In this document: piece by piece, positions 12,301-49,367 of the stretch
Layout: every line of letters starts with the position of its first letter
How positions within the stretch are numbered: the stretch's first letter is position 1
Source: Monocercomonoides exilis PA203
Lineage: Eukaryota; Protista; Preaxostyla
Direction: 5' to 3'
Assembly (NCBI GenBank): GCA_001643675.2
Contig: LSRY02000030.1
Location: 1,116,001 to 1,180,000, forward strand
DNA: 64,000 bases
Notes under the pieces: generated by a model
Database searches by the model: none
Told to the model about the DNA's origin: nothing
What the model saw: only the letters and a program-made list of their open reading frames with translations
Made by a program: the position numbers and the translations under genes

Positions 12301-15300
12301 AAAGTGAATGGGAGCTCGTTTTCGATGTGCAAGTGCTCGAGTGAGACAGGTTGTGGAGGAGGGCTGTTTATTGATGGATCTGACCCACATGCGAATTATG
12401 GAAATGAGAGTCAGATTCCACCTCTGAATTTCAAGATTGTGAACATCCTGTTTGTGATGAATGAGGCACATGTGGGGAAAGACGTGTTTGTCAGATGCCA
12501 CTCGATTGAGCACCAGATCAACGAAACACTGTTTGCACTGAACTACAGCCAGGAGTCACTGAACTCGAACAACTCGATCTGTGGGAGGGATGCTTGGAGC
12601 GAGGGAGATGTTGATCTGATTCCGCTGATCACATTCTATTATTCGGCACAGGTGTTTGTGAGTGGGAGAGGGAGTGATGGGAGGGGATGTGGATCACAGA
12701 GCAACCCTTGTTCCAGCATCAACTGTGGGGTTGAGCACATTCAGGAAGGAGTAATGAATGGGATTCTGATTGATGGAGAAGGGTTTGTGAGGAAGGAGTG
12801 TGTGATTGGGGATCTGGTTGTGAACTCATTGAAAAAGACACAGGGGGTTGTTCGATTGAACTGCAAGATTGAGAAATCAGCAGAGAAGGATTGTGTGATG
12901 GAGTTTGTGAATGAATGTCCAGTGGAGAGGTGCTCATTCCAGTTTGAAGATGGATTTGAGTCAACTCACAATTATATCATGAAAGTGAAGAACGGGTCAA
13001 TGGAGATCCAAAAATGCGAGTTCTTCTCTTCTTCTGATGAACTGAAGTTGAACAGTTCTGTTGTGAGTGTGGAAAGTGGAGAGCTGAAGATATTTGATTC
13101 AACATTCAGGGATATTCATTCAACAAGATCAATTCTTTCATTATGTGAGGAATCGAATGTGACAATTGATGAGACAACAATTTTGAATATCGAATGTGAG
13201 GGAGATGTTGTGAGTGTTGGAGGGAAAGCGAGAGTGGAGATGAAAGAGATTGGAGTTGAGAATGTGACTCTGTTGTTGGAGGGGTGTGTGATTGGGATGG
13301 AAGAAGCTGAGCAAGAGGTGAGTGTGCTGAACAGCTCATTTGGAAAGTGTGAGAATTCGGCTGATAAGCGAAGGATGATGCAGATCAGGAATTCCAAGAA
13401 TGTGAGTATTGAGATATGTGTGTTTGATGGAGAGAAAGAAATTGAGTTTATCAATGAAGAAAACAATAGAAAAGAAGGATTATGCAAATGGAATGGGTCA
13501 TTGGTTGATGTTGAGAAGAGCAATGTGGAGATGAGGGAAACAACGATTATGAAGAGCAAGGCAGGTGGGTTGTGTGTGAGTGGAGGAAGTGTGAAGATTG
13601 AGAAGGGAGAGTTTGAGAACAACAACCCATCGATTGAGGGATATCCATCAGCTCGAAGGAATGTGATTTGTGAAGGGAATGGGGAGTTGAATGTTGTGAG
13701 TGTGAAAGGGGGAGATGGGTTGAAAGATAACTCATCATTGTGGATATTGGATGAGGGATGCGAATTGGGAGGGATAGCAACTGAAAGAGGATCATCATTT
13801 TTCATCCCTGTTTTGGAAGAGGTGAAGAACATAACACAGCCAAATGGGAATGTGGAGTTGATGATTCATGGAAAGCTGCTTCTGCCATGCGATTTGTTGG
13901 TGAAGATGAGCATGAAAAATGGAGATGAAGAGGAGATTGTGAGAAAGGGGATTGAAGAAGGAGGGTTTGTGTCAGAGAATGAGATTCACTCGGTTATTTC
14001 ATGTTCGGAATGGGAGAAAGTGAGAGAAGAGACAGAAGTGAGTGTGTGCGTTGCGTTTGGAAAAGCTGATTCACTTTCATCAACAGATTCGGTTATTGTG
14101 AAGAACAGGAGTGAAAGTGTTGGAAAAGGAGATGAAAAACTTGTTGAAGGAGAGAAAGAAAGAAAATCACATTTGTTGTTGATTGTTATTATCATGGCAG
14201 TTATTCTATTAATTGTTTTGATTGTTTCTGTGATATTTATTGTTCGATGGAAGAAGGTGAAGAATGAAGCAGAAGATTTGAGAGAGATAGTTAATGACAC
14301 AGTGAGGAAGGATCCGAAGGTATTTGAGATGGTGACGATGGAGATGTCTCCAGAAGAGCAGTGGAGAAGAGCAGAGAAGGAAGCAGAGAAGAAGAATGAA
14401 GAGAGAATGAAGAAGAGAATGAATGGAAAGGAGATGGTTCATTCAGAGTCATCTGAGCATCTTCTATCTGAGAGTGGATCAACTGAATACATACTGGGAA
14501 AAGACTCAGATAAGATCCCTCAATGGATGCTGGAGAAAGTGGATGAGAAAGAGGAAGAAGAAGAGACAAGAAAGCGAACTCCTTCACCATCTGTCTCATC
14601 AACTTCAACCACTGATTCAGATTCCACTTTTATCCGACCAGAGAGTCTGTGCCCAACCACCTCATCGATGTCGAATCTGGTGGATGCAATGGCCTGCTCA
14701 TCCCCTCATGAGAAGCTGATTGTGGATTTGAGAGATTCATTGTTCATGTTGCTTCATGGGATGAATAAGACAAAGGAGATGGCAATTGGCTCACTGAAGG
14801 AAAGAGAGCAGACAGCTGCACAGATCCTGTTCTGGGTGGCCAATCTGGCACTCCATTCATTTGACGAGATGGAAAATGGATTATCTTCTCTTTCCACTCT
14901 GAGTCCTCACATTGTGTTATTTTCGGAACACATGGTCATCTGCATTGTCATGCACTCCGACTTCTCTTCTGACGATGATTCAGACTCATCATCCTTCTCA
15001 TCATCAACAGTTGTAACTTCTGCCAGTGACAGTGATGATGATAGTGACTCCCTTCCCTCATCGGCATTTGAGGATGATGAATACAACAGGAAGGAGTGCC
15101 TAAGGTGGAAGGCGCCTGAGCTGCTGATCAACAAGAAGATGGGAGCAACGAAGGAGTCAGTTGTGTTCTCGATTGGGATGATGTTGTGGGAGTGTTTGAC
15201 TCTGGAAATCCCGTTTGGGGAGTATGAAGGAGAGGTGGCAGGGCAGAAGATTGTGAATGGGGAGAGGCCAGACATTGTAGCAATAAGTGGAAGCAGCTTT

Positions 15301-29358: not shown

Positions 29359-31962
29359 CTAATTCTTATTTGAAGAAACAGGTGCGAGCGTTACATTAAA
29401 AGAGCTTCCGCGAAGAGAAGAAAGCGAGAAAGTCATCGGCTGAGTCAAAGGATTTGCCTTCTTTTTACGAAATGTGTTTGAAGATCTGTTGAAAGACGAT
29501 GAACAATCATAATGATGAGAAGAATGTCCAGGAGGATGCACAGAACTTGTTTCAATTTGATGCAATTGAGAAGAATCAGTTGAGGAGCAGGGATTTTGAA
29601 TAGAGGAAAAACAGCTGTTGAAATCAGTCTGTTCAGAGCATGGAACAAAAGACGATGCAAATGGAAATCCAGGAGGAGGGCAAGAAAGTGGAGCATTGTC
29701 AAATTGAAATGGATCAGAATTATAAAAGTTAAACGATGGACATTCTGACTGCAAAGAAGCAGATGATGAAAAGGATGCATCAGGATAGGATTGAAATTGG
29801 GAAGGTTGACTAATTTCAGCTGAGGAGCAGTCAGCAGGAAAAAGAGATATGTCCTCTGATTCCCAAAAATTAGTTGAAAAATCATTTGAATGAAGCAGTT
29901 GCAAAGAAAATGTAGGTTCAAAAAATTGTGAATGGACAGTTTCTTCCTTTGGAGAAGACAAATATGTGTTTTGAGCAGATAGACGATCAGATGATGGCTG
30001 CAATGCAGAATGTGGAATGTCTAATATTTGATGCCCTTCAATGGCAGGCAGAGTTTGGCATTCATCTGATTCGACGAGTGGTTGAGGGAAGCAATTGATG
30101 TTTGTACCGACAAAAGGGAATGACGAAGGAGCGATGAAAGAAGAAAGATCAGATTCAAACATCATCTCATTCGAATCAAAAGATGTAGAAAAAAAATTAG
30201 GAGGAAGAGGAAGAGGAGGAGGAGTTGATAATGATGAAGGGCAAAAGCATTTATCTTTCAGCTCTTGTTTCAAGTTCTTCAGCAACCTTTTCTTTTTCTT
30301 CTCTTCTCTTATTGTCTCATAATAATTGAATTTTTCTTTTTCTGAAAATTCCTTCCTCTTCTCACTTTCCACAAGCTTTCTCTCTTTCTTTTTGATTTTT
30401 TCCTGAAGTCTTTCAATTTCACCAGTTCTGTCTTCCGCTTCTTCTTCTTCTTCTCCTCCTTCTCTTCTTCCTTCTCCCTCCAAACGCCTCAGTATCTCCT
30501 TCATTTCTTCCAACGTCGCCTTCTTTCTTTTGCGGTGTGCCCATTCCTCTTCTTTCTTCTCCGCTTTCTCAACCAATCGTCTGCGCTCCGCTTCCCAAAG
30601 CATCTTTTCCTCTGCGCTGAAGAAAGAGAATTTATCTACCCATTTCCCGTAAAGTCTGAAGAACTTCTTCGCTTCCTTCAGCTGATCCCGCGTCAAACGT
30701 ATTCTCTGCTTCAGAAGAGCAGAATCTGAACTTTGAATGTCTTGAGTGACCTGCGCGTGATAATCAATGTCATTAATTGTATCACATCCTTCGTCAATCT
30801 CTTCATTGTCATTCATGTGCTCCTCTTCCATCATTTGCATTTGAGTGAGCTTTGTCAAAAACTCTTCGTCTTCTCTTCGCCATTTGACAGCCATTGCAAT
30901 CTGCCCTCTCATCGAATAGTCAGATTCTCTTCTTCCGTCTCTCTCGACTTCCACGTCAATCGCCAGTTTCGCACGATCCTTTTCGGTGGGCTCCCAATCG
31001 CATATCATTTGAATGAAGTCTGCTTCTTCTTCATCTTCAGCAACATCCTCTTTCTTTTCTTGTTTCTTCATTATATCATCTTCCGAATCAGCAAAAGAAG
31101 TAAAATACGATGCAGAATTTCCGATGCTTATTGTATTCTTTTCTGAAAAAATTGGGATATTTTCGAATTTGTCTTCAAAATCTCCAAGAGATGAATGTCT
31201 AAGAATGCAGTCATCCTTATTTGACATCTGACTAAACTTTGGCTCTCTTGAATCATTCACATGCAAATTTTTCTTTGACAACTCATTTGAAACTTTCTTT
31301 TTCATCTCCGAAAAGAAATTAAATCCTAAAATTGTATCAGTATCGTTTGAATCTGGTTTATTCATCCTCTCTTTATGATCAACAAATGAACAGACTTTTT
31401 GATTATGCAGCATAGACTCTTCACTTTCTTGTTCTTTGGAGTTAACAACTTCCGTATCTAATTTTATGAGTTGCAACTGATTCGTAGACTCGAATTCTGT
31501 TGCCTTTTTATAATTGGAATGCGAATTAAGCTTTGCTTGACCATGAGAAGAAAATGGCAGATCAGATTTTTCACTCGAAAAAGTCTTACAAATTAATTCA
31601 TTTTCAGATTCTGTACAAACGCCACAATTTTGTGATTTGCTTAAAAGTGATTTGTGCGATAAAGTTGTTGGTAAGATTAATGTATTGCATGAAGAATGAT
31701 TGTCAATATTTCCATCCTTTTTGACTGGCTCAATATGATGAATGTGATCGTTTTGCACTTCCTTTTCAAAATAAAATGGCAAAGACTGCCGAGATGTTAA
31801 TTCTTTGTACAAACCCTGAGATGATTGATAAAACGAGCTTGACAAAAAAGATGAAGAAACATTAACATTTCCAGAACTTGAATATGCACTTCTGCGTAAA
31901 CAACTTGAAATCATTGCGTAATTCTTATTGCTGCACTGCTCAATGATGAATATATTCCTCAA
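29359..31962 (-). CDS. Hypothetical protein with a central charged coiled-coil and Ser/Pro/Phe-rich tails
   Basis: 867-aa ORF in AT-rich surroundings; no recognisable domain; start codon uncertain. Divergent from the gene at 32175, about 210 bp away. Confidence 0.75.
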   Translation of the reverse strand: MRNIFIIEQCSNKNYAMISSCLRRSAYSSSGNVNVSSSFLSSSFYQSSQGLYKELTSRQSLPFYFEKEVQNDHIHHIEPVKKDGNIDNHSSCNTLILPTTLSHKSLLSKSQNCGVCTESENELICKTFSSEKSDLPFSSHGQAKLNSHSNYKKATEFESTNQLQLIKLDTEVVNSKEQESEESMLHNQKVCSFVDHKERMNKPDSNDTDTILGFNFFSEMKKKVSNELSKKNLHVNDSREPKFSQMSNKDDCILRHSSLGDFEDKFENIPIFSEKNTISIGNSASYFTSFADSEDDIMKKQEKKEDVAEDEEEADFIQMICDWEPTEKDRAKLAIDVEVERDGRRESDYSMRGQIAMAVKWRREDEEFLTKLTQMQMMEEEHMNDNEEIDEGCDTINDIDYHAQVTQDIQSSDSALLKQRIRLTRDQLKEAKKFFRLYGKWVDKFSFFSAEEKMLWEAERRRLVEKAEKKEEEWAHRKRKKATLEEMKEILRRLEGEGRREGGEEEEEAEDRTGEIERLQEKIKKKERKLVESEKRKEFSEKEKFNYYETIREEKKKKRLLKNLKQELKDKCFCPSSLSTPPPLPLPPNFFSTSFDSNEMMFESDLSSFIAPSSFPFVGTNINCFPQPLVESDECQTLPAIEGHQILDIPHSALQPSSDRLSAQNTYLSSPKEETVHSQFFEPTFSLQLLHSNDFSTNFWESEDISLFPADCSSAEISQPSQFQSYPDASFSSSASLQSECPSFNFYNSDPFQFDNAPLSCPPPGFPFASSFVPCSEQTDFNSCFSSIQNPCSSTDSSQLHQIETSSVHPPGHSSHHYDCSSSFNRSSNTFRKKKANPLTQPMTFSLSSLRGSSFNVTLAPVSSNKN

Positions 31963-32174: not shown

Positions 32175-35100
32175 ATGGATCAAGTGGACGAAGAACAGAG
32201 GTCTGTTAGTCGTTCAACAACAAGCTCTGCATCTACCAGAGGAACAGTCTCTGTTGTGAGATTTAGTGGATTTGATCAATGGTTTGGATTTATTTTGTAA
32301 ATGCCTCTCAGATTTTATTTTCTTTTTGTGAAGGATATATTCAAGTTTTTATCCTTTTCACAGGGTATGCTTTTAGCATTTTTTATTATTCGTTAAAAAC
32401 TTTTATTTTATAGGAAAAAAGGGCAGATAATGCCTTTCAAATATTGACAATTATTGTAATTGCACTTCAACTTGTAGGCATTTCTTTTCGAACTAATTTC
32501 TGGCCTATTTTTGGAGATGCAAGAATGTACTGCCATGACTTTTTTGCGTATGCTATTATTTTGTTTGTATCAACAAAATAAACACTTTTTCAATCAAAAA
32601 AATAGTTATCTTGATTTTTCTATATGTTGGAGTAGCGAAACATTTCATCTTGTTATGTTCATTCTCGTTACTGTACCATTTGTTATTACCATAATCGGCT
32701 ATGGAATAATTACTTTGATATCAAAAAAAGAAGGATTGATTGCTCAATGGTTCTGCAGATTAATTTATTTATTCGCCAATCTCGAAACAACAATTTTTTA
32801 CATCCCTACAATCAACGTTTATTTTGGTCAATATTCGTGTTTATTTGGTGATGATGCATTGACATGCAACGATGCATCTCACATTACGCTATTAATTTTT
32901 TCAAGTCTTTTTGGAGTTATTTTTGTCTCATTCGGTATTTTCTTTCGAACGTTTATGTTTGACTATGCATTAAACACAAAGAATTATTTTGCAACAATCA
33001 CTGGGATGGTGTATCTTCTGGCACAGGTGATGATTACCATCATGTCTATCAGCACGTCAGTTATCCACACGATTACTCAGAAGATCCCCGCTGTTAATTC
33101 AGCGATATGTGTTTTCTGCATATTCATATTTGAGGCGTACGTGTATGTGTGGCAGCCCTACTTCAAGCCGATGGGCAATGCGCTCTACATGTCCATCATG
33201 GGCGTGGCAATGGTGGTGTTTCTCTTCTCCTTTGTGGTTGATGCCGTGTTTGGGGAGATCACACTGAATACAACAGTCAGCCAGCTGAACGGCGGCATCG
33301 GAGCGATGGTTGGCGTGTGGGTTGCGCTTGTTGTTCTGATGGTTGCTGTTGGGCTGCTGCTATTCTGGCTGACAATGCGGAAGAGCAAGAACGAGTGGGC
33401 GATGAGAGAAGGAGAAGCCATCCCGATTCTGCACGGAAAGACAGACGACTTTACTGTTCTGTCAGACACCAACATGAAGATGTACGAGAAGAAGACAGCA
33501 GCATTGGCACTTGCAGGCATCGGAGGAGGAGGAGGAGGAGGAGGAGGAGGAGGAGGAGGAGGAGTAAGTGCTGGAGGAGGAGGAATAGCTGGCACGACTG
33601 GAATGGCAGGCGCATTCACAGCACTTTATTCATCTCCTCGTAATGTGCCCAGAAAAGGAGAGAAAAGCGGAGAGAAAGCAAACACCACCTTTGACGTGCC
33701 TTTGTCCTCGACGGCACTCCAATCGCAGTTAAAAAAGCTGCCTCTGACGATTTCAGTTGGCAGTCAGCATTCTTCCTATCCAAATGAACAGGCAAACACT
33801 CACCCACTCGCAGAGGCAGGCGAATGCGATGGCAATTCAGACACGCCTCTTCAGTCGTCCTTCCGCCGCACAAGTTCTGCCTTCCACCTCTCTTCCTTTG
33901 AGCCCCCTGTCACTCCAATGCCGCCCATCGCCCCGCTCCCTCTCGCAACGCCTTCGTCTGTCATTTCTGCCCCTTTCGCGGCCTCAAACACGCTTTCTGC
34001 TCGTTCTGCTTCTCCTCCCATTCAGCCATTCAACACAACTGCAACGGCAGCCTCAGCTCTTCCATCGGCTTCTTCTCCTTCTGCTTCATCATCATCATCA
34101 TCATCATCGTCGTCGTCGTCTTCTTCTTCTTCTTCTGTCATTTCAGCCATTTCGCCTGGTTTCCAACGATCCATCAACTCTTCTGTTTCATCACAGCCAT
34201 CTTCCTCTCTTTCCACATCAATCACTGCACCATTGAATACATCATCATCATCATCTTCTTCTTCCTCTTCCTCTTCCTCTTCTTCCCTCAATCATTCTTC
34301 ATTTCCCCCACAAATCTCTTCGGTACAAACAAAACAGACTCAACTTTCCTCTCCAAAAGTGCCTCTTTCTCCTCAACAGCAACAGCAGCCAAATGAGCAG
34401 AAAATAAAAAATTCCAATTCGCAGTCGAAACTGAGGCAGACATCGAACAAGATGAACATCACAGCCAGCCCACGCAATGCAATAAAGCAGAATGAACATC
34501 CAACACAAACACAAAATGGAATGACAAACATGCCAAATGCATCTGGAGTGTCTGGTGTGTCTAACATAACCACATCTCAACTGTCCCACAGATATCCCCC
34601 TTCTTCCTCGTATGTTCAAGGGATACGCACACAAAACCAACCTGGTCTGACTCCGCGTTCAGGCGAAGTTCTGCCTGCCTCTTCGACCACAACAGCTGCT
34701 GGCGTCTCTGTTAACTCTTCTTTGATGGCCTCCTCTTCTCCTTTGAATGCGCAGAGGACATTCACACCACGTGTGCCCAATCCGCTCACACCTTCAATCA
34801 CTTGCCCTACTCCTTCATACGGCCAGCCTGCTTTTCCTTTTTCTGCTTCTTCTTCCTCATCGTCATCTTCCTCCTCCTCTTCTCCTTCGTCTCTACCTCT
34901 CCCATCTGGTGCTGATTCAATCTCTCATTTCTCTTCCACATTCGACCAGCAATCTTCTTCACACCCAAAAAAGTGCACATCTCCTTCTCTCTTCCCCAAA
35001 TCCCGCTCTCCTCTCCCACCTCGCCAGCTGCCCCGCTACATCACCTCCTCTCAAGTGGAACACTCCCTCCGCTTTTTGTCATGCAGACACCTCGCAAAGA

Positions 35101-38100
35101 ACAGAGAAGTGCTCGCCTTTGCAGAGAAGCTCATCCGCCACGGCACAAAAAGATTTCCAGACTCGACCGACCTCTGGCTGATAGCAGCGCTTGTTCATCA
35201 CTACTTCACAGGGAACACATACAAATGTGCAGACAACCTGCGGAGTGCCAGGCAGTGCATCCCATACATTGTGCAGAGGTGGGTGGTGTATTCGATGATG
35301 CAGGATTTGGAGAGGAGAGGGATGGACGGCGCTGCCAATGCCACCACAACCACATCCAGCTCCACCGGAAGGGTGTACGGGGTGAGTGGGAGTGGGAGTG
35401 GGAGTGGAGGGAGTGGGCTGTGGAACTCGCTGGCGAGCTCGCGGAGTCACCACGCGTCGACTGATGATCTGGCGCATCTGGCAGGGATAAGCGAGGAAGG
35501 ATCGTCACTCGACGGGGGTGGGATGTCGATGCAGGCGTCTGTCTCTCTGAAGATGTCACTGGCGAATGCACACAAACACTACGAGATCTCAAAGGCCTTT
35601 CTGAAGCAGACGTACCAGCTGTGTCTGAAGGAGGTGTTCGACCTCAACCGCGTCATGCGCTTTCTCGACAAGGCAATCAAATACGAGCTGCTTGCACACA
35701 ACGAGCTGACTAAATTGCTAGCCACTCATCCTGACTCCACTCAGGTGCTGAGGACACTGGGGGTGCTTTTGAGGGACATCGATAGAGACGACGAAACAGC
35801 ACAGGCGCTGTTCATTCAGGCGAATCAGTTGGAAGAGGAGACTTTGTTTGGGAACACGGAAACAAACTCATTTGATATGCAGTCATTGCACAGTGAGATA
35901 CATGGAGGAGTTGGAGGAATAGGTGGAGGGATGGGAGGTGGAGGAGGAGGGAATGGGAAGAATGACTATTCAAGAGTGTCGCAGCAGTCGCAAGGGGCAG
36001 GGCAGAAGGGAGGGCAGCAGAATGCGGTGGATTCAAGGGCAAATGTGCTGCTGCTGAAGAAGAAGGCAGAAAAGAGAAAGAATAAACACAAAAAACATGG
36101 GGCGAAGAGAGCAGATGGGATGAGTACGATTTTGGAGAACGACAGTCTCAACAAGAAAGTGCTAGCACATTTTCTGCAGCTTCTGATAGCGATGATGCTG
36201 ATCATGCTGCTGGCGTGGACGCTGACGTTTGTGATGTGCATTGAGCGTTTCACTCAATCTTCGCTCACTCTGAACTTCGTGGCGTGTGCAGGAGACTTAA
36301 CATCCTTTATGAACATTGCGTATCTGAACTATCGCTACTACCTCCTCATCGACAACCCTCTGATCGACAAGAGCGGAGTGAAGTTTGTTCCTTCTGTCGA
36401 TTTGATCTGCAAAAGACTGCAATATTTCCAGAAGCTGATCTGCTCGCGGCTGGAGGAGATGTACGGACTGACTACAAACCAGAACGAGTTCGAAGCTTTG
36501 GAGCTTTCAACAGCAAATGTCATCTTCTGGCTGGACGATGGCTCTGTCCCGGCAGGTGAGCTGCCTGTTCGGTGGATGCTGCCGATCAGCTCGATGGAGC
36601 TGTTGACGTCGCTTCTGAACATCATCAACGACCAGTGGATCTTCCACGACCTGGCTGACCCCTACTACCCGAGCAACTGTCTCTATGTCTCCTCCAATCT
36701 GCCCATTCTGATGACAGAGCAGCTGAAGTCTGTTGCGCTGCTGGGCTCAGCAAATGCACGGAACACGACGACACTGCTGAAGACGATCAATATTGTGGCT
36801 GGGCTGAGTGTGACACTGCTGACAGGGCTAGTGGCGACTATGCAATATGTGGTGACGATCAAGAGGCTGAAGAAATCGCGAAGAGAAGTGTTTCTGTCGT
36901 TTGTGACGGCATCGAAGAAGTCCATTGCGAAAGTGAAGAAGCGGCTGGATGATGCAGACAGAGACCAGCTGGACACAGAAACAACATTCTCTTCGCTGAC
37001 AGGCACAAACACAAACACAAACACAAACACGAACACGAACACCCACCACTCAACTGAAGTGACGTCGATGCATGAGAAGTCAGACTCCGGACTGCATGCA
37101 CAGAGACACATGCAGCGAAAGCTGAGGAACGGTGTTGTGGACACGAGTGCCAATCCAGTGGAGTTTGTGAGTGTGAGTGGCAGCGACGAGACAGAGGCAC
37201 TTTTCGATGGAGAAGACGGTAGAGACGGGAGAGAAGATGGAAGAGACGAAGGAAACAGCACAGAAAGCGAGGCTGAAATGGGCTTTGGGTCATATCGCTC
37301 ACAATCGCAGACAATGTCACAGACACTCAGCCAACCTCTTTCGACGAATTCGCGTGGGGCACTTGGAAAGTACAATAACAGTGACAATAATATCAATAAC
37401 AACAACAACAATAACAATATGAATGATCACAGTTCATCGCATCTGACAGACAATTCACAGAATTGTGCTTTGGACAAGTCAGAAACATTGACAGCAGGTG
37501 AGATGATGTCGCCAACATCAGAAGGATATCTGCAGATGGGAGTGTATGAAGAGCGAGGGCTGGCTGGAGAGGAGGAAGAGGAGGAGAAGAAGATGCAGTC
37601 GCCATTGGCATTTCCTGGCTTTGAGGAAGAGATACTGATGAAGAGAGGGCGAAAGGGAAGCAAAGGAGTGCATGCGAATGGAGGAAGATACTCTGCTTCT
37701 GGTGATGATATTGATGCTGATGGAGATATTGATAGGCAGATGGGACAAGATGGAAGAATGAAACAAGGTGGATATTCCTATCAGCACAGCGATGGACAGC
37801 AGAAGGGGAAGATTGAAGGAGATTTGAGTGAAGAAGAGAAAAGAAGATGGTTGACGATGCGGTCAGAGATGAACGAGGAGATGTTGGGAGGAGAAAGAAG
37901 TGAGATGGGGAATGGTTATGAGAGAGAAAGAGAAAGAGAAGAGGAAGATGAGCAGAAGATGGAGAAGATGGAGCTGTGTTTGATGAGAGAGAATGATGAG
38001 TATGAAATGTCGATTGCAAACAGCCAGAAAAGAATGTGCAAAATGGAATTTGACAGAGCTGTCAAAATGAATGAGAAATTGAGGCAGATGCTGCTGGCAG

Positions 38101-41100
38101 AGGAGGAAGAGGAAAAAGCGATGGAAGAAAACGACCCGATTCGACTTTTGAGAAAAGGGCAGAAAGAACAACAACAAAGACAGATGAGACAAGAACAGCA
38201 AATGGAAGAGGAAAGAACGAAAATGGCATGGATGAATGAGGAAGAGAGAGAAGAAGAGAAAGGAGAAAGAGAGGAGGAGGAGGAAGAAGAAGAAGAAGAG
38301 AAGCCAATTCTGTTGTTTGACGATGAAAGCGAATGGGGAGCAGAAGAAGCAGTTGATGCCATGGCCCATCTGAATGAGACAAATCCCTTCAAATATCTTC
38401 TCTCGCCTCATCTTCTGCCCTCCCTCAACACTTCTTCTGATGCAACTTCTGCAGTCAACACAAAAACACTCACAAATGTTCGCTCTTTTCATCGCAATCA
38501 TTCTGTCACCACAGACTCATACAGCGAGCCCCTGCAGAAGGCAGAGAAAGAAGAGAAGATGATCCACCCGTCTGCCTCTGCCACTGTCATATCGACGTCT
38601 TCTGCTGTTCCCAATGAGCTGAACAGGAATGAAGAGAGGGAAGAGGATGTTTTGGTGGCATTTCCACATGTTTCGAATGGAAATGTGGATGAGACAGAAC
38701 AAAAGAAGAAGGAAGGAGAAGGAGAAGGAGAAGGAGAAAAAGAAGGAGAAAAAGAAGGAGACGAAGTGAGAAGGGTGGCAGAAGAAGAGAATGGAATGAA
38801 TGTGTTGGATGATAAGGAAGTGCGTGCAACGACAGCGAAAGGGAAGAAGAAGAAGAAAAAGAAGAAGAAGAAGAAGAAGGCGACAGAAGAGTCAGGGAAA
38901 TCAGATATGCCTCCAGTGACACCTGCAACGTTGGTGTCTTATTTCTCTGAAAAATCATTTGATGAAAAGAAATCGGAGCAAGAGAATAGAGAAGAAGGGG
39001 AAAGAGAAGGGGAAAGGGGAAGAAAAGGGGAGGAAGAAGGAGAAGGAGAGAAAGAAAGGATAAAAGAACTGAAAGACGAAAGTGAACAAAAGATGAAGAA
39101 AAAGAAGAATGCAAAACAAAATGCAACAGAAAAAATGCCAAATGAAATTGCACTTTCACCTTCTGAAAGCACAAAACAAGAAGGCAAAGAAGAAGGAGAA
39201 GAAGGAGAAGGAAGGAGGAGAAGGAAAGAAGAAACACCGAAAGCCAATTCGGATGAGAAAAGAGCGACAGAAAATGAGGAAAGTTCGAGTAAAGACAGCT
39301 TAAAACAGCTGAGTGACAGAACAGCAGCGTCACACTCAGAACATTCAGATGAGAAGAGAAAGAAGAGAGAGAAGAAGGAAGAAAAGAAGGAGGGGAAAGA
39401 AAGAAAGAGGAGGAGAAGAAGAAGTATTGAAGGAAAAGAGAAAGAGAAAGAGAAAGAAAGAGAAGAAGGAGATGATAACGATGATGATGAAGTGAATGAA
39501 GAGGCAGAAAAATCAAAAGAAAGAAGACGAAAGAGCAAAAGAAGAAGAAGAAGCGAATCGAAAAGAAGAGAAGATAAAAGCAAAAGAAGCAGAAAAAGCG
39601 AAAAATCGCCAAAAAGAAGGAGAAGAGAAGAGAATGAAAGCGAAGCAAAAGAAGAGAGAAAAGAAGAAGCAGAATCGAAAACAGAAGAAGAAGAAGAAGA
39701 AGAGAAACAAAAAGAGAAGAAGAAGAAAGAGAAGAAAGAGAAGAGGAAGAGTCAGTCGAAGAAAAGAACAAACCGAAGGCAGAATGAAGATGTTTCAAAG
39801 GCAGAGAAAGAAGAAAGACACCATCGAAGCCAAAGGAATAGAAAGAGAAGACATTCCAAACAGAACACACATTCTGACAGAAGGTCAGATGAAACATCAC
39901 ATTCTGCTAATTCCTCTTCTATTTCTCGTTCTTCACGCTCTCCTTCTCCTTCTTCTTCTGTTTCTCATTCATCTTATCGCTCGTCCTCCTCCTCTTTTTC
40001 TCGTTCATCCTCCTCTTCCTCTTCTTCTTTGTCTCATTCTCTTCGTCATCCTTCCTCCACCTGCCCCTCTCCCACCTCGTCTGCCTCACACAGAAATGAG
40101 ACATCAACAGACACAGAGCATATGCAGCCACTCTCATTCAACTCACTCGCCTTCAATCCTTCTCAGCTCGACCCACAAGTGCAGCTCCAGATGCAGATGC
40201 AGATGATGATGATGATGCAATACCAACAGAACGGAATGAACGGAATGAACGGCTCTCCTTTTGTTCCCCCACTCCCAGGTGCAAACATCGCTGCTGCCTC
40301 TGCCTCTGCCCCAAACACCTCTCTCCCTTCCTTCCGAACAGCCAGCGGGAGCATCCAGCCAATCGTCCGCTCTTTCTCAGCAACAGAACAGGACATTCTG
40401 AACAAACAGCGCCAATCAGCAGACACACAAGCAGCAGGCGTGCCTGTCCCGCCTTCCTCTTCTCTTTACTCCAACTACTCCACTTACACTGCCCCTCCCT
40501 CCTCTTTCATCCCCCCACAAGGCTCAAACACAGCCAACGGTGTCTATTTTGCATCGTCTGTGCCATCAACACCAGGAAGATTTGGAATATTCCCGCCGTT
40601 TATGCCAATACCCAGCACTTCCAATACAAACATGGCATCTCTCTCACCCGAAGAGAAGAAGATGATGCTTTCACAAATGTCATCATCATCATCTTCTTCA
40701 ACAACTTCTTCTTCGTCTTCTTCTTCTTCCACCCCACATAATCTCCAACTGCAGAACATCCAAAGCATTCAGAATGCTCCTTCCTCTGCCTCCTTCTCGT
40801 CTCCCCTCCTTTCTCCACACAGAACAGCCTCTCTGTCTCCTCAGATTGCACCGCCGGCGATGTTCCCTTCGCCCCGTGTGCCGTTGGGCACCCTCTCTCA
40901 TCCGATGGAGAAGTCGAAGTCTTGTCTTGCTGAAAGACAGCCGAGTCCGCTTCAGCAAGGCACAACAGCCAATCAGTCGTCGCTCATCACTTCTGCCTCT
41001 TCTTCTGCTTCCTCCACGGCATATTCTTCGTCTTCTGCTGGCTCCTCTTCCTCTCTCATTCACCAGCAGGGAGACAGCAACGAGAATGCAGTGGCGAAGA

Positions 41101-42752
41101 AGGCAGCGTATTTGGAGGAGGCTGAAAAGGCAGCGAAGGAGAAAGCAGAAGAGGAGAAAGAGGAGATGAAGGAGAAGATTGACAAGATGACCTCTTTCAT
41201 TCCATTCAGCTTTTATGTGCGTGTGGTGCTTGGGGTGGGCATAGTGTTTATTCTGTCTGCTGTCTATTATGCCTTCTCCACATTTGCAGTGGACGATGTC
41301 ATCAGCTCAAACGATGCTGTGTTCATGTCTGACTATCGTGCTGTGCTGATGGCGCAGATGGCATCAATCGCCATTTCTGTTGCCACTCCTTCCATTCTGT
41401 CTTATGAGAAGAGCGGGTTCAACGTGTCTTCGTCGACCAATCCTGTCTGGAGTGATCTGTCGCACATGTCCCACGATGTGCAGAAGATGCAGATGATCCT
41501 GTCGAAGCTGGTGACATTCTTCATCGGCGTCAACAGAAAAGTGAATGAAGGCGGAAATGCTTTTGCAGATGGCACAAAACTGACAGGCGACGAAGCACTC
41601 GACGCCTTCAGCACAACGCGCACTGTGAAAGAAGGCTCACCTTTTGTGTCTCTTTTGTATGGCACACAAACATGTCTGTGCGACAATCCAGAGGAATGCA
41701 GCATAAAAGACAGGTTGTATGGCATGGAAGGAACATACGCTGGACTGGAAGGGCTGATTGAGACAGCACTCTCACACATCATTGTCCTCTCAAACATCAC
41801 AATTCTCCCTAATTCTGCTGCAAACGATGCAAATTCTGACATTTCTGATGCCAATTCGCAGGAGAACTACCACACGACAGCAATGCGAGTGACGTTGAAT
41901 GCATCTGAAATCCAGTTCATCAACACAGGTGTCAACTTCGACATTTACGGAGGGCTGGACAAGTTCAACACGCAGATTGTGGAGATGCAGTCAGCCGCCC
42001 TTGTTCGCTACCGGACAATTCTCATTGTGCTCTTCATCATCGGCATCGTTGGCCTGTCTATTGGGGCATTCGTGTGTCTCTTCCCGACAAAGCCGCTGCT
42101 GGCAGACGTTGCCATCCACACGCTGAAGATCGAAGAACTTGACCCGAACAACGACTCCAGCAACGACGGGGTGATTGAGTGGAGCGAGCAGCACACGGCA
42201 GACCTGCCCCGCTTCGACAATGCGCATCAGAATGTGCTGGTGCTGGCGAGAGAACTGGCACAGGCAGCAGAGGAAGTGAGTGACTTGCACTTGGAAGGCT
42301 CAGAGGCGCGGCTGAAGATTGCATCAGCGCTGTCACCGCTGCTGATTGGGTTTATGTCAGTTCTGAATGACGAGGAAGGGCTGATGGCGAGGCTGAGAGT
42401 GATTGGGCGGCACGTGAAGATGCACCAGACAGAACACGTGGCAGTGCTGAAGGGGTTGCTGGAGGCTATTCATCAGATGGCGCTGGGGAAAGGGTCAGTG
42501 ACAGCTGTGCTGGAGCAGATCAACATGTGGGTGACGGAGCATGTGGCGCAGATGGACAAGGAGCTGGCGACGCTCATTTCAGGAAAGATGGAGAGCGAAG
42601 AGATAGACGGAGAGGTGGATCTGAAGGCAGGGCATATTCCAAGGTCGTATTTGGAGTATCTGGACTCAGACAATGCGAGCATGCAGGAGAAGACAGATCT
42701 GCACAAGCTGCATAGCCTGCTGCACATCAAGCAGCATTGGGAAGGATTGTAA
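32175..42752 (+). CDS. Giant multi-pass membrane protein, TmcB/TmcC-like (N-terminal TM bundle, TPR-like region, two TM-flanked loop domains) with a C-terminal hemerythrin-like domain; introns 32282-32333, 32365-32413, 32548-32605
   Basis: Three small 5' exons splice in frame (MDQVDEE...FDQW|IYSSFYPFHR|EKRAD...HDFFA|YLDFS). About 8 hydrophobic helices before 33370. TPR-like segments GTKRFPDSTDLWL and HPDSTQVLRTLGVLLRDIDRDDETAQALF. TM pairs at about 36160/36800 and 41210/42030. Hemerythrin pattern at 42171-42580. Confidence 0.85.
33522..33563 (+). repeat. (GGA)14 coding microsatellite, poly-Gly
   Basis: Perfect trinucleotide repeat inside the CDS. Confidence 0.9.
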
Positions 42753-43924
42753 GAAAGAAGAGGAATTAGAGGAAAATGATAAAGACAAAGAACAATATTA
42801 GCCAATGAAGGAATATCTTTGTGAAATCATTATGTTCTGTTGATTTGAAGTTGAAATTATCAGATTTTAAAGTTTCAATGAATGTGATAACTGAACAGTT
42901 TCTCACTCAAAATATTTCATCTGCATATGAATGGCAATGAATAGATTGATAAGCGTTTCTGTGTAAAGTGTTTTGTGGACGCTGTTCGGTTGATCTGACA
43001 TCATCATTTCCTTTCATCGCTTCGTTTCTGCATTTAATCTTTATGAGCATATTTTTTTTTCCAAAGTAAGAGTGAGCATTCTTTCTTCATTCTGTCAATC
43101 GAACCCTCTTCTTCAACTTGTTCCATTCTTTCCATTTGAAACTTCTATATTCCTTCTTGTGAGCAAAAGAGTGGATGTTTCATATTCCTTTTTAAGAGAT
43201 GCTTTTGAGATGATTACACGAAATTTCTGTATGTCTTCTTAACACAATGTTTACATTGTGTGAATATCATCAATCCTGTGTATATGTTCCTTATGCCAAA
43301 AATAATTATTAAATATTTATTTATTTTCTAATTAGTTTTTGATTGCTTTATTTCAAGTTGGTTTCGATTAATTTTCTTTCTTTTTTGTATGTGATTTTGC
43401 TATTAGAAAATATGTACTCAAACAAATTGATATGTTTTTATAACACCTTCTTCAATCATCGCTGCATTTAATTCATTTCACAGTTAATATTTATGTTTTT
43501 GCTATGTTTTTCTTTTTCTTAATTTCTTTTTCTTTTTGAATGACTTGCTGCTCTTTCAATAATGTATTTTTTAAAGAGCATCTGTTAGTACAATACAAAT
43601 ATTTTTCTTTTTCGTAACTTTTGGAAAATATTTGTTTTATAACATAAATGTTCATTTATTATTGTTTATAAAGTGAAAAGATGTTAAAGAATCCTTTCTT
43701 TGATTATGATTTTCAACAGAATGTCATTTAGAGTTTAATCATGTATTCAATTCTTATCTTCATGTTATTTCATTATTGCATCTTTTCAATTATTTGAAAT
43801 GACATTCATTATTTATAATTATAATTATTTGAGCGAAGAGTCGCAAATTTTCCATAAATCAAATACATTTTATAAATTTTTATCTTTTATATAGCCCATA
43901 ATAACAATTTTTGGACTCTTTCAA

Positions 43925-46900
43925 ATGTCTTTTTTGAATAACAAAGAGGAATTTGAAAAGTCATTGTTTGAGTTTCATGAAAAAAGAGGAACAAAGATTG
44001 CAAGAGTTCCTGTTATGTCACGAATACAACTTGATCTATTTCGACTTTTTCAAGTTGTTCAGAAAAATGGAGGTTACGATGAAGTGAGTGTGAAACGTCT
44101 TTGGAAAAAGGTAAATAGAGAAATAGATATTCCTATAATAGGGTCAAGCCCTTATATTATTCGTAAGCATTACAAACAAATTCTTTATCCATTTGAAAGG
44201 GTGAAAATACATTTTCTTCCAGATGACTTGTCCATTGGACTTGATCAAGGAATACCTGAAATTCCATCTACATCTCCGAATCCTCAACCAACATTCACAC
44301 TGGATTCTGATGTTATGGATGACTCTCATTTGAATAAGATATTGACAAGTTTTCTTCCTCGCCCTCGAAAGACATTTAGTTTCTTTAGAATTCCTGCAAT
44401 GCAATCATCCACAAACGTTAAGAAAAAAATTGCTTCATTTGCGTTTGAAACAGGAGAAGAAAAAGATCTTGTTTGCAAATATTAATATAGTTTTTATTTA
44501 ACATTTTTAATAACACATTTTTTGTAACTAGGAATGTTTATTTCGCACAATTAGATCTTCTTCTAGAAATGCTGTCGATGGAAGTTTAACGCATTTGAAC
44601 GATTTTGGTGCTGTGCTATCATTGTTATGGTCTTCAATGGCAATGAACATTGAATCTATTTCATATCAACATTGGGAGGATTTCCGCGTAAGATGGATCG
44701 ATTGGAAAGAGAAATATGTTTATTCAATGAAAAATGAGGAGAAAGAAAAATTTCAAATTCCAATAAAAGTGATACATCTCAATGATCAACTCAATCAGTC
44801 AATTGAATCGTTATGCCGTTCATCAAAATGCACCATTATTGAAGAAAAAGACGGATCTGCTTTGAAAGACCAAAGCTATTTGGCAACTGCAAAATATTCA
44901 ACGAAAGCATTTAATGAACTGTCTGATCTTGTTACACAAAAGATAAACCTTATATGTGAATTTTACAAGAAACTGATTCAAAATTCTGAGAAAACTTTGA
45001 ACTCTTTTCGATTAAAAGCAGAAGAAAAAAACTTTTTATACGAAAAATCAAAAGAAGACTTCTTCCAAAATATGCTCAATAACAAATACATCAGCGATGC
45101 AATAGAAAGCGATCTGTCTTTGTTTCATTTCGCATCAACTTCCTGCGAAGAGATGCTTTTAACTGATGTTTTGAATCAAGAGGAATTTGGCAGTTTAGCA
45201 GCAGAAACAAAGAAAACGAAAAAAATGCGCGCTTTCAATGAAATTGATCAGCATAAAGAAGAATTCAAATCCTCAAAAGATGAAAAATTTGAAAATAAAG
45301 ACGATGATATGCCAGTAAAAGATGAAGAAAGAAGTAAACGGAAAGGAAAAATAGAAGAAATGAACTGCGAGAAAGAAGATGCAACTGAACAATTATCTCC
45401 ACCATTTTTGGTCTTTTTTGATGCGTGCTCAAGTTTATTCCCTTCGTCACTTCCTTTGATTGCTGACACAAACACAGGCGAACTCTCAATAATGCCATCT
45501 TCTAATGCTCAATCATCAAATATATATTCTTCTTCTTCTTCTTCCCACATTTCATCTGCTTTGCATATTCCGCAAGATTTTGTTCCTGGAATGCGTCATT
45601 CTCCTTCTGAACTAACTCAGAACGTCTTATCCAATCAATTGTCTTCTCAGCAATTCAATGAGTATCCTTCAACACACACCCAATGCGTTTCAAATAGCCG
45701 TTCTGCTGAAGTTCTCTTTGAGAATTCATCTGCTTTTGCTTCTGTTAATCTGCCTCTGCTATCTTCTCCGCACAAATCCGAGTACGAAAAAATTATGCCA
45801 TTTATCGAGCCATTTGGGAAATTGATAGACAAACACAGAGAAATGTTGGATTCGAAGAAGAAAGCACTAAAAGAAAAGGAAATGAAAACAGCAAAGAACG
45901 ATCAGATAAAAGAAGAAGCAGTTAACAACAAAAAAATCGGAAAAAAGATGAAAGAAAGAAGCGATCAGAAAAAGACACCAAAAAGAAGGGACTTATCTCC
46001 GTTGCCTCAATCACTTGCAACATCTTCTCCATTCGAACAGCCATCTTCATCTTCCCTTTCATCCCCTTTTCAATCAACTTCGTCGCCTCTATCGCAGAAT
46101 TCCAACCATTCACCAGATAAGCTTTCCACCTCAAAACAGACTCATTCAACAGTTCATTCTGAGACGCAGCTGTGTCAACAGGGAAATCTGAAGCCAGCAG
46201 ACGAGTCAAGTCCCACAAAAGCGGAATCTTCTGAACTGAAAGTGCGCATTCATCTGAATATTCGCCGTCCTCCTCTGAATAAAAATGCACAATCTGCCGA
46301 ACAGTCGCAATTTTCCACTTCAACAGCATCATCAGATGGTTTTGCTCCCTCTCCTTCAACTCCTCCCTCTCCATTTCCTTCTCTTTCAACTTCTTGCTCG
46401 TCACCTCCTCCTCTTCCTCTTCCACTTCAACCTCTTGAAACTGAAACCACTTCAATCTCAGCTTCTTTTTCTCCTTCGCTTTCACCTTCGCCTTCAACTT
46501 CGCCTTCGACTTCTTCTTCTTCATTCACTTCATCTTCGTCTTCGTCTCAGATTGCAAGTTCTAAGCAAAGCAGTGTTGCTGTTAAGCAATCAAGTTCTGA
46601 TTCATGTTCTTCTTCTTCAAAATGTTCAATAATTCCTGATAATCCAATTAACACTGATAATTCTGATATTTCGAGCAATGCTAACAACATGTCTTCAATT
46701 TCATTCTTCAAACACCCTGCTATGGATACAGATAAAAGCCCTATTTATTTTCAGTTGCGTTTCAACTTTCAAAACTCAAACAATTCCATCACAAGTTCAA
46801 ATTTGCTTTGTCTTGATTCTTTAGAGGAAAGAAAAAAATGGATGCAGAAAAGAAAATTGCTCTTTTCTTCGTATTTATCACCTTCGCGTTATATTTCTTG

Positions 46901-49367
46901 TTTTCCTCGTAACATTTCATTTTCTCTTCCTTCAAATGAACTTTCTTCTTCTATTTCTTCTGTTTCTTCATCTGATTTGTTCACATCAAATTCTGAGTGT
47001 CTTTCGCCTATTGAGCTGCTTTTTTCGATGGCAATGTTTGGCTCTCAATGCAAATGTGCAAAGTCAACCATCCAACGCACTTTCATCGATTCCTCATCTC
47101 ATTCACAGCAGTTTGATATCACTTCTATTTTGGGTGTGAACAGCTATTCCGATCCGGTGGAAGCATCTGATGGTTTTTCCTCTGATCCTTCTCGTGTTTA
47201 CACAACATGCACTGAAAGTGTCCCCAATACAAAGTGTATTTGCTGTCGTTCTCTGCTTTGTTTGAGCAATCAGTGCTGTGAGGCAATGATCGATGCGTTG
47301 GAGCTGCTCCACAAGGAGGAAGAGGAAGAAGTCGAGAGGCGTTTGGAAAAGTTCAATTGGCTTTTGGAGCTCGCACCGTTTCGAGTGTCTTCAGAAGATG
47401 AGAGCATATTCACTGAAGAAAGATACCAAGAAGCGGAAAAGGAGAAAGAGAAAGAAGATAAGATGCGAAAGAATGAGGCGCCTGTTAGATTTGCCAACGA
47501 TAAAGAAAATGAAGTCTTTTCTGCAAAAGAAAAGGTTGATTCAGCCGAACACGAGTGGTGTTGGAAAGATGCGCTGAACGAGACACAGCTAAGTGCGTTT
47601 GCAAAGGATGGATTGAATAACGTCGCAAGGATTAATGGAATTGAGCTGAATGAAGACAAAGACGAGCTGATCGACTGGAAGAACGAAAAAGAAGATAAAC
47701 TAACTGAAAACCAAGAGATTGATAAAGAATGTGTTCTGATTGAAGAACAAGGCGTCCAGCTACAGCAAATACCGGAATTGTTAAAGAATGTTAAAGATAC
47801 AAAATATCAGTCAAATACGCTGAAGCGCGCTCTCTCGTATCTTTATATTCCAGACAAATACGACAAGCACGAAGAAGCAAAGTTGCAGGATCAAAGTGAA
47901 AAAACAAAGTTCAAATCATTTCGTGATTATGTGCTTTCTTTTGTATCTGAAGGATCATTCCTCGATTGCACAGAATTTTCTCGTATGCAGTCTGTTATTG
48001 CACATCACCCAGCAGTTGCACAAACAGTCATTCCTTTGTTTGTGTCTCTGCTTTGGATAGAAAGTGCATTCCATCATCTTGGCCCGATTATATCTTCATT
48101 TTCATCTTTCCCACACATTTCACAGATTGCCACTTCATCAATAGATCAGATGCTTTTTCTTTCTGCAAAGACTCAGCATCCTCATCCTCATTTCTCTTTC
48201 CCAATTCAACATCCACTACTCACTTCACTGCTTCACTTGCTCTATCTACTCTCTATTCCTTCTCCTTCACGCACACCAAATCATCCGTTTGCTCGATCAA
48301 ACGATCATTTTTGCTTTCCATCTCTTATTCAACTATCACTTTTACCACAAGCTATTTCTCGAGCTTTTGTTGATACATTGATTGATATTGTAAATCACGA
48401 AATTTATTTCAGAAAATTAAAAAGCTCAAAGTTTCAACATATTCATGATTCCTCAAGCTGCGGCAAAGGCACTGCAGATGAAGTGGAAGCTGCTTCACTT
48501 ATTCCAAGTATCTCTATTGAAGACGCGTTCACTTCTTGTTATCATTCGTTAATTGCAGAAACACTTCTTCTTCATTTTGACAAGGAAGCTTCAAATGATT
48601 GTCTGAGGTCGGCTGAGCTTCCATCTTCTTCATTGTGCACATCATTCACGATAACTTCATTTTCAAACGACTGCAATACTACGCCATGCCATTTCAATCG
48701 TACTGGTGAATTATTCATTTCTGTTCTCACCATTCTTGCATCTATCTCTGAGAGTTCGAATAATGCATCTTTATTTGTTAGCGATCAATTTTGGAACAAT
48801 ACAAAATTTGATGAAACGGCAATGCCATCATATTTTTTGTCTTCTTCATTTGAAAACGATATAAAGACAAAGAAACCATCTTTTCGTTTCTTTTGCTTTA
48901 TAGCTTCATTGGTTCTGCTTATTTTGGAAAGTGATGTTGGCGAAGAGTTTTTGTTGGGTCTTATTTGCCTTGAAAATTCACTAAATGCGCTTGTATCTTT
49001 TCTAAATTCTGAATCGTCTGATGAAATGAATAATTCAACATGTCGTAAAATGCAGCTCTTGTTACCACTTCTATCAGTTATTTCTGTTTCCGTACTCGAC
49101 AGTTTCATTTCTTTACTTTTTGGAAGGATTAAAAAAGAGCTTATTCAACAAAAAAGGATAAGGCGATGGGATATAAAAAGAATTGAGATATCTGCTTTGC
49201 ATGTGTGCAGCAATTTACTAATTTTGATTCCAATGCTTCGACCTGCTCTGAGAAGAAATAAGAATGTTGTTGATTTTTTGTTTGATGAATGGAAAGATTC
49301 TTCAAAGAATAAAGGTAAATGTGTTGTTCGCTGCGTTCAAATGATTTTTTCTAAGCCCAATTTTTGA
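43925..49367 (+). CDS. ARID/BRIGHT-domain protein (possible SWI/SNF-RSC Swi1/ARID1/ARID2-like subunit); intron 44471-44531
   Basis: The N-terminal EFEKSLFEFHEKRGT...P...LDLFRLFQVVQKNGGYDEV...WKKV...IRKHYKQILYPFE is a classic ARID domain. It joins the 1590-aa ORF in frame via a 61-nt GTTTGC...TAG intron; the C-terminus is helical and Leu-rich. Confidence 0.85.

Follow-up and report, generated by a model that had tools for sequence, protein, structure and literature searches.

A hemerythrin tail short of one iron ligand on a giant TmcB-type membrane protein of Monocercomonoides exilis, and the oxymonad family that shares it

Introduction

What is a hemerythrin domain doing at the end of a giant membrane protein in an anaerobic protist? 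The question is raised by a gene in a 64,000-nucleotide (nt) stretch of the Monocercomonoides exilis PA203 genome (contig LSRY02000030.1, positions 1,116,001 to 1,180,000 of the forward strand), here called the window, within which positions are counted from the first letter. Positions 32175-42752 (+) are one gene, comprised of two short 5' exons and a 10.1-kilobase (kb) exon, for a protein of about 3464 amino acids (aa). Oxygen, iron and redox sensing in mitochondrion-less anaerobic protists is largely unexplained, and the hemerythrin domains of DcrH, Bhr-DGC and FBXL5 serve as O2, redox or iron switches.

The original prediction, made from the nucleotide letters, described a multi-pass membrane receptor that ends in a hemerythrin-like domain and read it as a gas or metal sensor. 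Its observation is confirmed and its interpretation is partly supported: O2, NO or iron sensing by this protein is a reasonable hypothesis on the sequence evidence, and for the tail, a role as metal or redox module seems likelier than one as oxygen carrier. Throughout, searches and structure predictions were made exon by exon or on pieces of the protein.

A hemerythrin fold with six of seven ligands

Two features make up the C-terminal end of the protein.

42210-42575 (+): hemerythrin domain, predicted cytosolic; ligand pattern H-V-E-H-H-H-D
42576-42749 (+): C-terminal tail, with the core of a P-x-S-x4-L-D-S-D-x3-M-K/Q-E motif at 42636-42671; helices predicted at lower confidence

The domain matches the Pfam hemerythrin family PF01814 at 34 bits (cut-off 25.3; E 4.8e-8) over profile positions 5-126 of 127, and scores 35.2 bits in the genome scan. 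A phmmer search with the tail alone found no match among PDB sequences, and a family profile was needed; built from nine in-genome tails, it matched the DcrH hemerythrin (DcrH-Hr) of Desulfovibrio vulgaris along its whole length (E 7.9e-15) and the Methylococcus bacteriohemerythrin at E ~1e-11. AlphaFold modeled the tail as a four-helix bundle (helices 53-78, 83-114, 119-144 and 150-176) with a predicted local distance difference test (pLDDT) value of about 85 in the core. The top Foldseek match to this model was again DcrH-Hr (2awc; TM-score 0.84, root-mean-square deviation (rmsd) 2.5 Å; range of DcrH-Hr TM-scores 0.82-0.84), followed by bacteriohemerythrin (McHr, TM-score 0.80). By profile and by predicted structure alike, the tail has a genuine hemerythrin fold, and its type is that of bacterial DcrH, as residue spacing had suggested.

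A full ligand set consists of His in helix A, His-x3-Glu in helix B, His-x3-His in helix C and His-x4-Asp in helix D. The corresponding columns here hold His 42225, Val 42360, Glu 42372, His 42423, His 42435, His 42540 and Asp 42555, or six of the seven. Of the di-iron pattern first proposed, the fold and these six ligands therefore stand, whereas the helix-B His, which the proposed motif had left out, does not: its codon (42360-42362) specifies Val, at the position that aligns with DcrH His59 (residue number counted along the alignment). Val is also encoded in P0005 and P0151, two open reading frames (ORFs) from contigs of independent Illumina RNA runs, and is thus not an assembly error.

In classical hemerythrin, the helix-A and helix-B His are ligands of the five-coordinate, O2-binding iron (Fe2), which makes the Val position an Fe2 ligand position. 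Judged by its residues, the tail keeps the three His of the six-coordinate iron (Fe1), both bridging carboxylates and one of the two Fe2 His. The replacement of an Fe2 His by Val makes reversible O2 binding as in DcrH doubtful, and a role of the tail as a reversible O2 carrier appears unlikely. The motif beyond the domain, at 42636-42671, recurs in seven of the nine sequences aligned in A1, among them this gene and its closer paralogues, and could be a docking or sorting signal.

Site variants across a large oxymonad family

The tail belongs to a family. PF01814 matches above cut-off number 13 in the genome, all of them in TmcB-hemerythrin genes or truncated copies of these. Eleven lie 3-5 kb downstream of a same-strand match to the TPR_TmcB family, ten of these within the same long ORF, and the remaining two are truncated duplicates on contig C47. 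TPR_TmcB itself is found above cut-off at no fewer than 69 loci, that is, at least 69. The family tail profile reaches further, with 63 matches at about 58 loci, nearly all at the ends of 1600-2650-aa ORFs; at 3424 codons, the present gene is the longest among the ORFs with a detected hemerythrin tail.

Hemerythrin in the place of a PAS or cyclase domain is not peculiar to this gene: about 58 TmcB-type genes in the genome end in the same way. Genome-wide, PAS_9 gave no match and the four cyclase loci (PF00211) are not near TmcB loci; no member of the TmcB-hemerythrin family in this genome carries PAS or cyclase.

The family, sought in other oxymonads, occurs in Blattamonas nauphoetae, where several members are named "putative hemerythrin" by NCBI (1441-3353 aa), and in Streblomastix strix. 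BLAST blocks align in the same order with Blattamonas P0087 and P0119 (four to five blocks each), which UniRef names TmcB/TmcC TPR domain-containing, a name also borne by Streblomastix P0032. With the TPR region of P0152, a typical 1956-aa family member assembled from public sequencing-run contigs, as the homology query, both of the two matches were oxymonad. A 2021 survey reported tmcB-family homologues in Carpediemonas and their absence from all other sampled metamonads (PMC8516963). The at least 69 TPR_TmcB loci found here contradict that absence and correct the picture: TmcB-type proteins are abundant in oxymonads.

Several other loci of this family were noted. On contig C47, L003 (G000:C47:217535-220870) and L004 (G000:C47:469558-472893) are near-identical extra copies of L002 (G000:C47:117630-120965), the 3' part of the TmcB-hemerythrin gene of that contig. 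Each comes with the adjoining Cys-rich, zf-HIT-like gene. The receptor copy itself is reduced to a 522-aa frame in one case and to a 208-aa frame with a TAG in the other. They resemble segmental duplications by which truncated receptor tails were left behind. In addition, two TPR_TmcB loci, G000:C58:1652584-1652940 (-) and G000:C16:1084710-1084988 (-), lie in longer frames of 3496 and 3804 aa; neither is among the hemerythrin tails found with the family profile, and both may lack the tail or have it on a separate exon.

The ligand patterns were tabulated from 59 fetched tails.

R-V-E-H-H-H-D: 17 loci of 59; the commonest, with both Fe2 His gone
H-H-E-H-H-H-D (intact): 8 loci of 59, two of them truncated copies
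H-V-E-H-H-H-D (as in this gene): 4 loci of 59
R-Q-E-H-H-H-D: 4 loci of 59
Other patterns or partly aligned tails: 26 loci of 59

The two Fe2 positions are thus mostly Arg (29/59) and Val (22/59). Column conservation, computed from 56 tails, is quite different at the other ligands: the median frequency of the top residue is 0.39, and it reaches 1.00 at the bridging Glu, 0.95-0.96 at the Fe1 His and 0.96 at the bridging Asp. Such conservation of five ligands among divergent paralogues argues for a bound metal.

Parts of the same table would also fit a degenerate, metal-free four-helix bundle that is kept for structure, dimerization or docking and whose hemerythrin ancestry is irrelevant to its present function. 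One ligand is lost in this gene, both Fe2 His are lost in the R-V-E-H-H-H-D class (17/59), and the Pfam score of 34 bits is modest. We consider a metal-free bundle unlikely, since five columns that are 95-100% conserved against a median of 39%, in 56 paralogues at 20-35% identity, are hard to explain without metal.

In a FastTree phylogeny of the tails, this gene falls in a 13-member clade (support 0.994) in which the helix-B position is never His and is occupied by V, C, S, T, A, G, M or N instead. The helix-A His is kept in all eight members that align there; the other five are unaligned at helix A. The clade-wide absence of the helix-B His indicates that the one-His-short state is a subfamily trait rather than a private lesion. 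The hemerythrin sites of the family, with seven, six or five ligands, form a natural series open to bioinorganic comparison, in which the present gene stands for the six-ligand class and has the largest scaffold of any member whose hemerythrin tail was detected.

The family also bears on the one earlier report of an oxymonad hemerythrin in the literature searched, the 2019 M. exilis genome paper, which lists hemerythrin among laterally transferred oxygen-stress genes without membrane-protein context (PMC6759080); the protein is named there once and its architecture is not described. As all 13 hemerythrin matches in the genome fall in the present family or in truncated copies of its members, the published "hemerythrin" is probably one of these genes, and probably not a small soluble stress protein. 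The large TmcB-hemerythrin family of oxymonads was not found described in the literature searched.

By analogy with Campylobacter, the published role would make the tail a membrane-anchored device that binds or detoxifies O2 near sensitive enzymes. The listing of hemerythrin among the oxygen-stress genes and the probable membership of the published protein in this family speak for such protection. Most family members, this gene included, lack at least one of the two Fe2 His, however, and a 12-pass, receptor-like scaffold of 1.7-3.5 thousand aa with ectodomains would be odd for a scavenger. Protection from oxygen stress would accordingly be a very unlikely function for this protein.

A twelve-pass carrier protein

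Upstream of the tail, the protein is divided into the following regions.

32432-33371 (+): bundle of eight transmembrane (TM) helices, predicted N-in/C-in from hydropathy and Lys/Arg (K/R) distribution; collinear with family members
33381-35042 (+): linker 1, about 555 aa of low complexity, Ser/Pro/Thr-rich (S 24%, P 10%), with short tandem repeats
35043-35840 (+): TPR_TmcB region, predicted cytosolic, split by a Gly/Ser-rich insertion; BLAST blocks to family members
36180-36860 (+): TM9, loop 1 (183 aa, 5 Cys) and TM10, from hydropathy; homologous block in paralogues
36861-41222 (+): linker 2, about 1450 aa of low complexity, Glu/Lys/Arg-rich and then Ser-rich
41223-42074 (+): TM11, loop 2 (246 aa) and TM12; helical stalk with a head insert

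This is, with high confidence, a 12-TM architecture with TPR region, linkers, two outside loops and a hemerythrin tail, and it agrees in each part with the layout first proposed. Of the roughly eight N-terminal helices then claimed, seven are encoded in the long exon: six by hydropathy, at ORF aa 45-63, 127-145, 160-185, 195-213, 229-247 and 267-285, and a weaker, conserved one at ORF aa 84-105. The eighth is in exon 2. The bundle has no Pfam match, and its Atlas neighbors are uncharacterized eukaryotic proteins. Two further TM pairs, at ORF aa 1224-1242 and 1426-1450 and at ORF aa 2905-2923 and 3170-3188, enclose loops of 183 and 246 aa by hydropathy. Loop 1 has no Pfam match and no similarity to a loop-2 profile, hence no sign of internal duplication.

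What had been called a TPR-like region is matched by TPR_TmcB (PF25474) at 35514-35840 (E 5.8e-8; 32.5-33.1 bits in the pieces, cut-off 27), and in the genome scan C26:1151511-1151840 scores 35.5 bits; alignment A3 of the region contains 17 invariant columns. The linkers, first described as long and disordered, are of low complexity by composition, with S at 24-25%, or E at 24% with K at 17%, and short trinucleotide-type repeats. The protein shows five collinear blocks against P0152, in the order that also holds for family members of 1.7-2.0 thousand aa, and its roughly 1500 extra residues lie almost entirely in the two linkers (counterparts of about 130 and 370 aa in P0152) and in the insertion within the TPR region.

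K/R clusters follow TM2, TM8 (4 of 15 residues) and TM10 (6 of 15), and the Cys-containing loops are on the opposite side. TM parity (8 + 4) and the positive-inside clusters after TM8 and TM10 place the hemerythrin on the cytosolic side, together with the TPR region, as originally proposed. We infer an N-in/C-in protein whose TPR region, both linkers and tail would be cytosolic and whose loops 1 and 2 would be outside or luminal.

Beyond TPR_TmcB and Hemerythrin, no Pfam family was found in the protein pieces, neither HAMP nor a methyl-accepting chemotaxis protein (MCP) domain, and no PAS, cyclase or other enzymatic domain, which bears out the claim that no enzymatic output is visible. A Pfam scan of the whole protein gave 0 families, probably through low-complexity bias correction; the matches came from the pieces.

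A predicted ectodomain that resembles bacterial sensors

The TM11-loop-TM12 module precedes the hemerythrin directly: TM12 continues from the last helix of loop 2, and the hemerythrin starts about 45 residues after TM12. The module is 272-278 aa long in 18 of 23 family members and 302 aa here. Loop 2 has no sequence-profile match in Pfam. Its alignment (A2) is invariant at G120, D133, D137, C161, C169 and G184; within the head insert (41583-41699), these include a D-x3-D within 41583-41609 and a Cys-x7-Cys pair within 41673-41699. The Cys pair fits a disulfide and an outside location, and the D-x3-D is perhaps a cation or ligand site.

In the AlphaFold model of the module (pLDDT 86.3), both TM helices extend into long stalk helices that carry the small head insert. 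Foldseek found no convincing match to this model in the PDB. In an exhaustive comparison with VIA-align, the top ten were without exception periplasmic sensor domains with a four-helix bundle, from bacterial chemoreceptors or histidine kinases (Z 9.8-12.6, rmsd 2.5-4.3, identity 4-8%). These were led by PilJ (Z 12.6), McpN (11.9), Vc1313 (11.8) and NarQ with its TM helices (11.2); PcaY was also among these ten, and Tsr ranked 17th. The model is suggestive of a resemblance to bacterial sensor ectodomains, that is, of resemblance and not membership. Given this likeness, the hemerythrin could equally well be the primary sensor or, on the cytosolic side, a modulator or second input.

Gene structure and apparent transcription

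The exons and introns of the gene are as follows.

32175-32296 (+): exon 1; begins with ATG and encodes a predicted cytosolic Ser/Thr/Arg-rich N-terminus that ends in the family motif RF-x-x-x-D-x-W-F
32297-32421 (+): intron 1, 125 nt; donor GTAAAT at 32297, acceptor tentative
32422-32547 (+): exon 2; TM1 and first outside loop, a frame-2 peptide in a different frame from exon 1
32548-32605 (+): intron 2, 58 nt; GTATGC...ATAG
32606-42752 (+): exon 3, 10.1 kb of open frame; stop TAA at 42750-42752

The open frame at 32478-42752 (+) has 3424 codons, or 3413 aa if counted from TTG 32511. Over its 10.2 kb, it contains no in-frame stop, compared with 146 and 117 in the other two plus-strand frames, a difference so sharp that the ORF is coding and not open by chance. 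The ATG at 32175, from which the gene had been thought to run continuously, is still a plausible start and is in frame with the long ORF; the continuous frame does not hold, as in-frame stops occur at 32298, 32391 and beyond, and two short introns (32297-32421 and 32548-32605) are needed.

Both introns were placed by sequence comparison, from GT-AG sites and the N-termini of paralogues. The assignment of intron 2 is unambiguous on this basis: its removal restores the family motif Y-L-D-F-S exactly as in P0152, P0119 and P0120. The position of intron 1 is tentative, being set by the sole GT-AG pair that retains the exon-1 motif and reaches exon 2 in frame. That motif, RF-x3-D-x-WF, is also found in paralogue L029 (G000:C43) and at the N-termini of P0152, P0119 and P0120, and the exon-2 peptide is homologous to the upstream exon of L029 and to P0152 residues ~50-95. 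Three other solutions were rejected. Donor 32297 with acceptor 32413 hits a stop, as does a 28-nt micro-exon at 32364-32391; donor 32256 with acceptor 32413 has better-looking splice sites, but loses the conserved motif.

The gene is apparently transcribed. Four metatranscriptomic runs of one study contain its 3' part completely. Contigs from the RNA libraries tile 34600-40599 with no mismatch, gap or credible intron and break only at simple repeats; their depth is even (for X1: 14.5, 17.8, 15.6, 15.6, 12.9, 7.6, 16 and 18.8). Apparent joints within contigs were considered as introns and discarded, because their sides are only 18-22 nt long and lie inside Glu/Lys- or Ser-coding repeats, as repeat cross-matches do. 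Contig L031 (ERR12411572) spans 39718-43323, about 570 nt beyond the stop, so that contigs tile 34600-43323 in all without mismatches; its end at 43323 has no poly(A) tail and does not prove where the transcript ends.

Could the locus instead consist of a TmcB-like gene for the N-terminal part and, separate from it, one for TM-loop-TM-hemerythrin, the two being joined by an open stretch of low complexity? Low-complexity DNA can stay open through composition alone. Public protein searches returned no full-length protein of about 3400 aa and only C-terminal fragments of 546 and 876 aa (P0005 and P0151, from run assemblies), and a homology search by region (33-290) of the whole protein found no match among proteins of 1877-5972 aa. 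The fragments begin at contig ends, however, at repeats. Across the 4.35 kb of linker 2 (36861-41211), only the coding frame is open (0 stops versus 47 and 72 in the other plus-strand frames), in every full family member a single ORF holds the two halves in this order, and the depth of RNA contigs over the linker matches that on either side of it. Two genes are thus highly improbable, and the single gene first proposed is retained.

Genomic surroundings

The downstream neighbor at 43925-44482 (+) encodes an ARID/BRIGHT DNA-binding domain (E 4.5e-23) and perhaps continues in 44595-49367 (+). Neither this 1590-aa ORF at 44595-49367 (+) nor the divergent upstream 867-aa ORF at 29359-31962 (-) has a Pfam match. 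Elsewhere in the window, positions 8001-15000 hold about 7 kb of strong GC skew (0.28-0.55) at 40-44% GC, which suggests another long, purine-rich coding region of low complexity.

A working model and its weak points

As a whole, the locus is best explained as a 12-pass TmcB-type protein with a metal-binding, iron- or redox-responsive hemerythrin tail, a reading based on sequence that we give nearly even chances, if slightly less. The tail would still bind metal, at least at an Fe1-type site, and may hold either a single metal or an altered di-iron site whose second position is open and easily oxidized. It would then act as a cytosolic module that responds to iron or redox state, and possibly to O2 or NO. 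TM12 and the juxtamembrane helix may link its folding or oxidation state to the ectodomain and the part of the protein in the membrane; the spacing of about 45 residues between TM12 and hemerythrin, together with the sensor-like ectodomain, suggests such conformational coupling across the membrane. Alternatively, the state of the tail may alter what the cytosolic scaffold of TPR region, linkers and conserved tail motif recruits. For this sensor mechanism in particular, the odds seem to us somewhat poorer; it is possible, and we propose it with reserve.

Several points weigh against this model. One ligand is gone, and the 13-member clade showed no His or carboxylate of its own that could compensate for it. 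No output domain is recognizable by Pfam in the protein pieces. The Z scores of 11-12.6 for loop 2 can be reached by unrelated helical bundles through arrangement alone. For the gene itself, the 5' introns were placed by splice-site pattern and paralogue comparison, and the RNA evidence consists of contigs from metatranscriptome libraries, which cannot prove transcription and in which DNA carry-over is possible.

The lack of an output domain could also be accommodated by a metal-dependent stability switch of the FBXL5 kind. Here the tail would be folded and the receptor stable with iron and in the right redox state; otherwise the tail would unfold and the receptor would be removed. The family would in this way adjust the abundance of about 58 membrane proteins to iron or oxygen status instead of relaying a signal. 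The family-wide retention of Fe1 and bridging ligands with relaxed O2-site ligands is compatible with this, as is the position of the tail as the last folded unit before a motif common to closer paralogues, and FBXL5 provides the precedent. With no degron or ubiquitin-ligase link known, and with a short juxtamembrane stretch to TM12 that fits conformational coupling at least as well, we regard a stability switch as quite unlikely.

The responsive-tail model can also be extended to the entire family. The roughly 58 genes might encode oxymonad two-input receptors, in which an outside four-helix-bundle ligand domain is wired through one TM helix to a hemerythrin-derived metal or redox module with graded site classes (intact di-iron, one-His-short and Arg/Val half-site). 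In this scheme, the present gene would represent the one-His-short sites, and the disordered linkers of its giant scaffold, about two thousand aa in all, would recruit partners. This extended form is speculative, and we would not expect it to hold in full. In either form, the family provides a concrete, testable candidate for oxygen, iron or redox sensing in these protists.

Relation to known systems

Dictyostelium TmcB and TmcC share with this protein a PF25474 match above cut-off and a multi-pass layout with a cytosolic TPR region, a likeness that is drawn through the profile only. For tmcB, a part in cAMP signaling during macrocyst (sexual) development is reported, as cited in PMC8516963 and PMC12750705. 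Unlike Dictyostelium TmcB/TmcC, the oxymonad TmcB family has expanded to its at least 69 TPR_TmcB loci. We know of no hemerythrin tail in the Dictyostelium proteins.

Among eukaryotes, FBXL5 and plant BTS/HRZ use the hemerythrin fold as a regulatory iron or oxygen sensor with non-canonical ligand sets. They are soluble E3-ligase components with an F-box or RING, however, and no such domain is present in this protein; its tail is nearest by profile to bacterial DcrH-type hemerythrins.

Within the genome, the closest systems are the paralogues with an intact site (G000:C35:289455-290093, two on C25, and others on C50, C47 and C11). They have the same block order and the same post-hemerythrin motif, yet they are 1750-2650 aa long compared with 3424 codons here, carry H-H-E-H-H-H-D rather than H-V-E-H-H-H-D, and are only 22-24% identical to this gene in the tail.

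The resemblances of the ectodomain are to bacterial proteins. As in PilJ (8wdf), McpN (6gcv), NarQ (5iji) and Tsr (2d4u), the TM helices of loop 2 continue into the first and last helices of the bundle; unlike those four-helix-bundle sensors, to which identity is 4-8%, loop 2 carries an additional head insert, in which two Cys are invariant.

Finally, among solved structures, the tail comes closest to the DcrH hemerythrin of Desulfovibrio vulgaris (PDB 2avk/2awc), by profile as well as by fold. The DcrH domain is likewise the C-terminal cytosolic domain of a transmembrane sensor protein, in its case a methyl-accepting chemotaxis protein. DcrH differs from the tail in having all seven ligands and an MCP signaling domain, whereas here, with no HAMP or MCP, the hemerythrin is carried by a eukaryotic 12-TM protein of the TmcB type.

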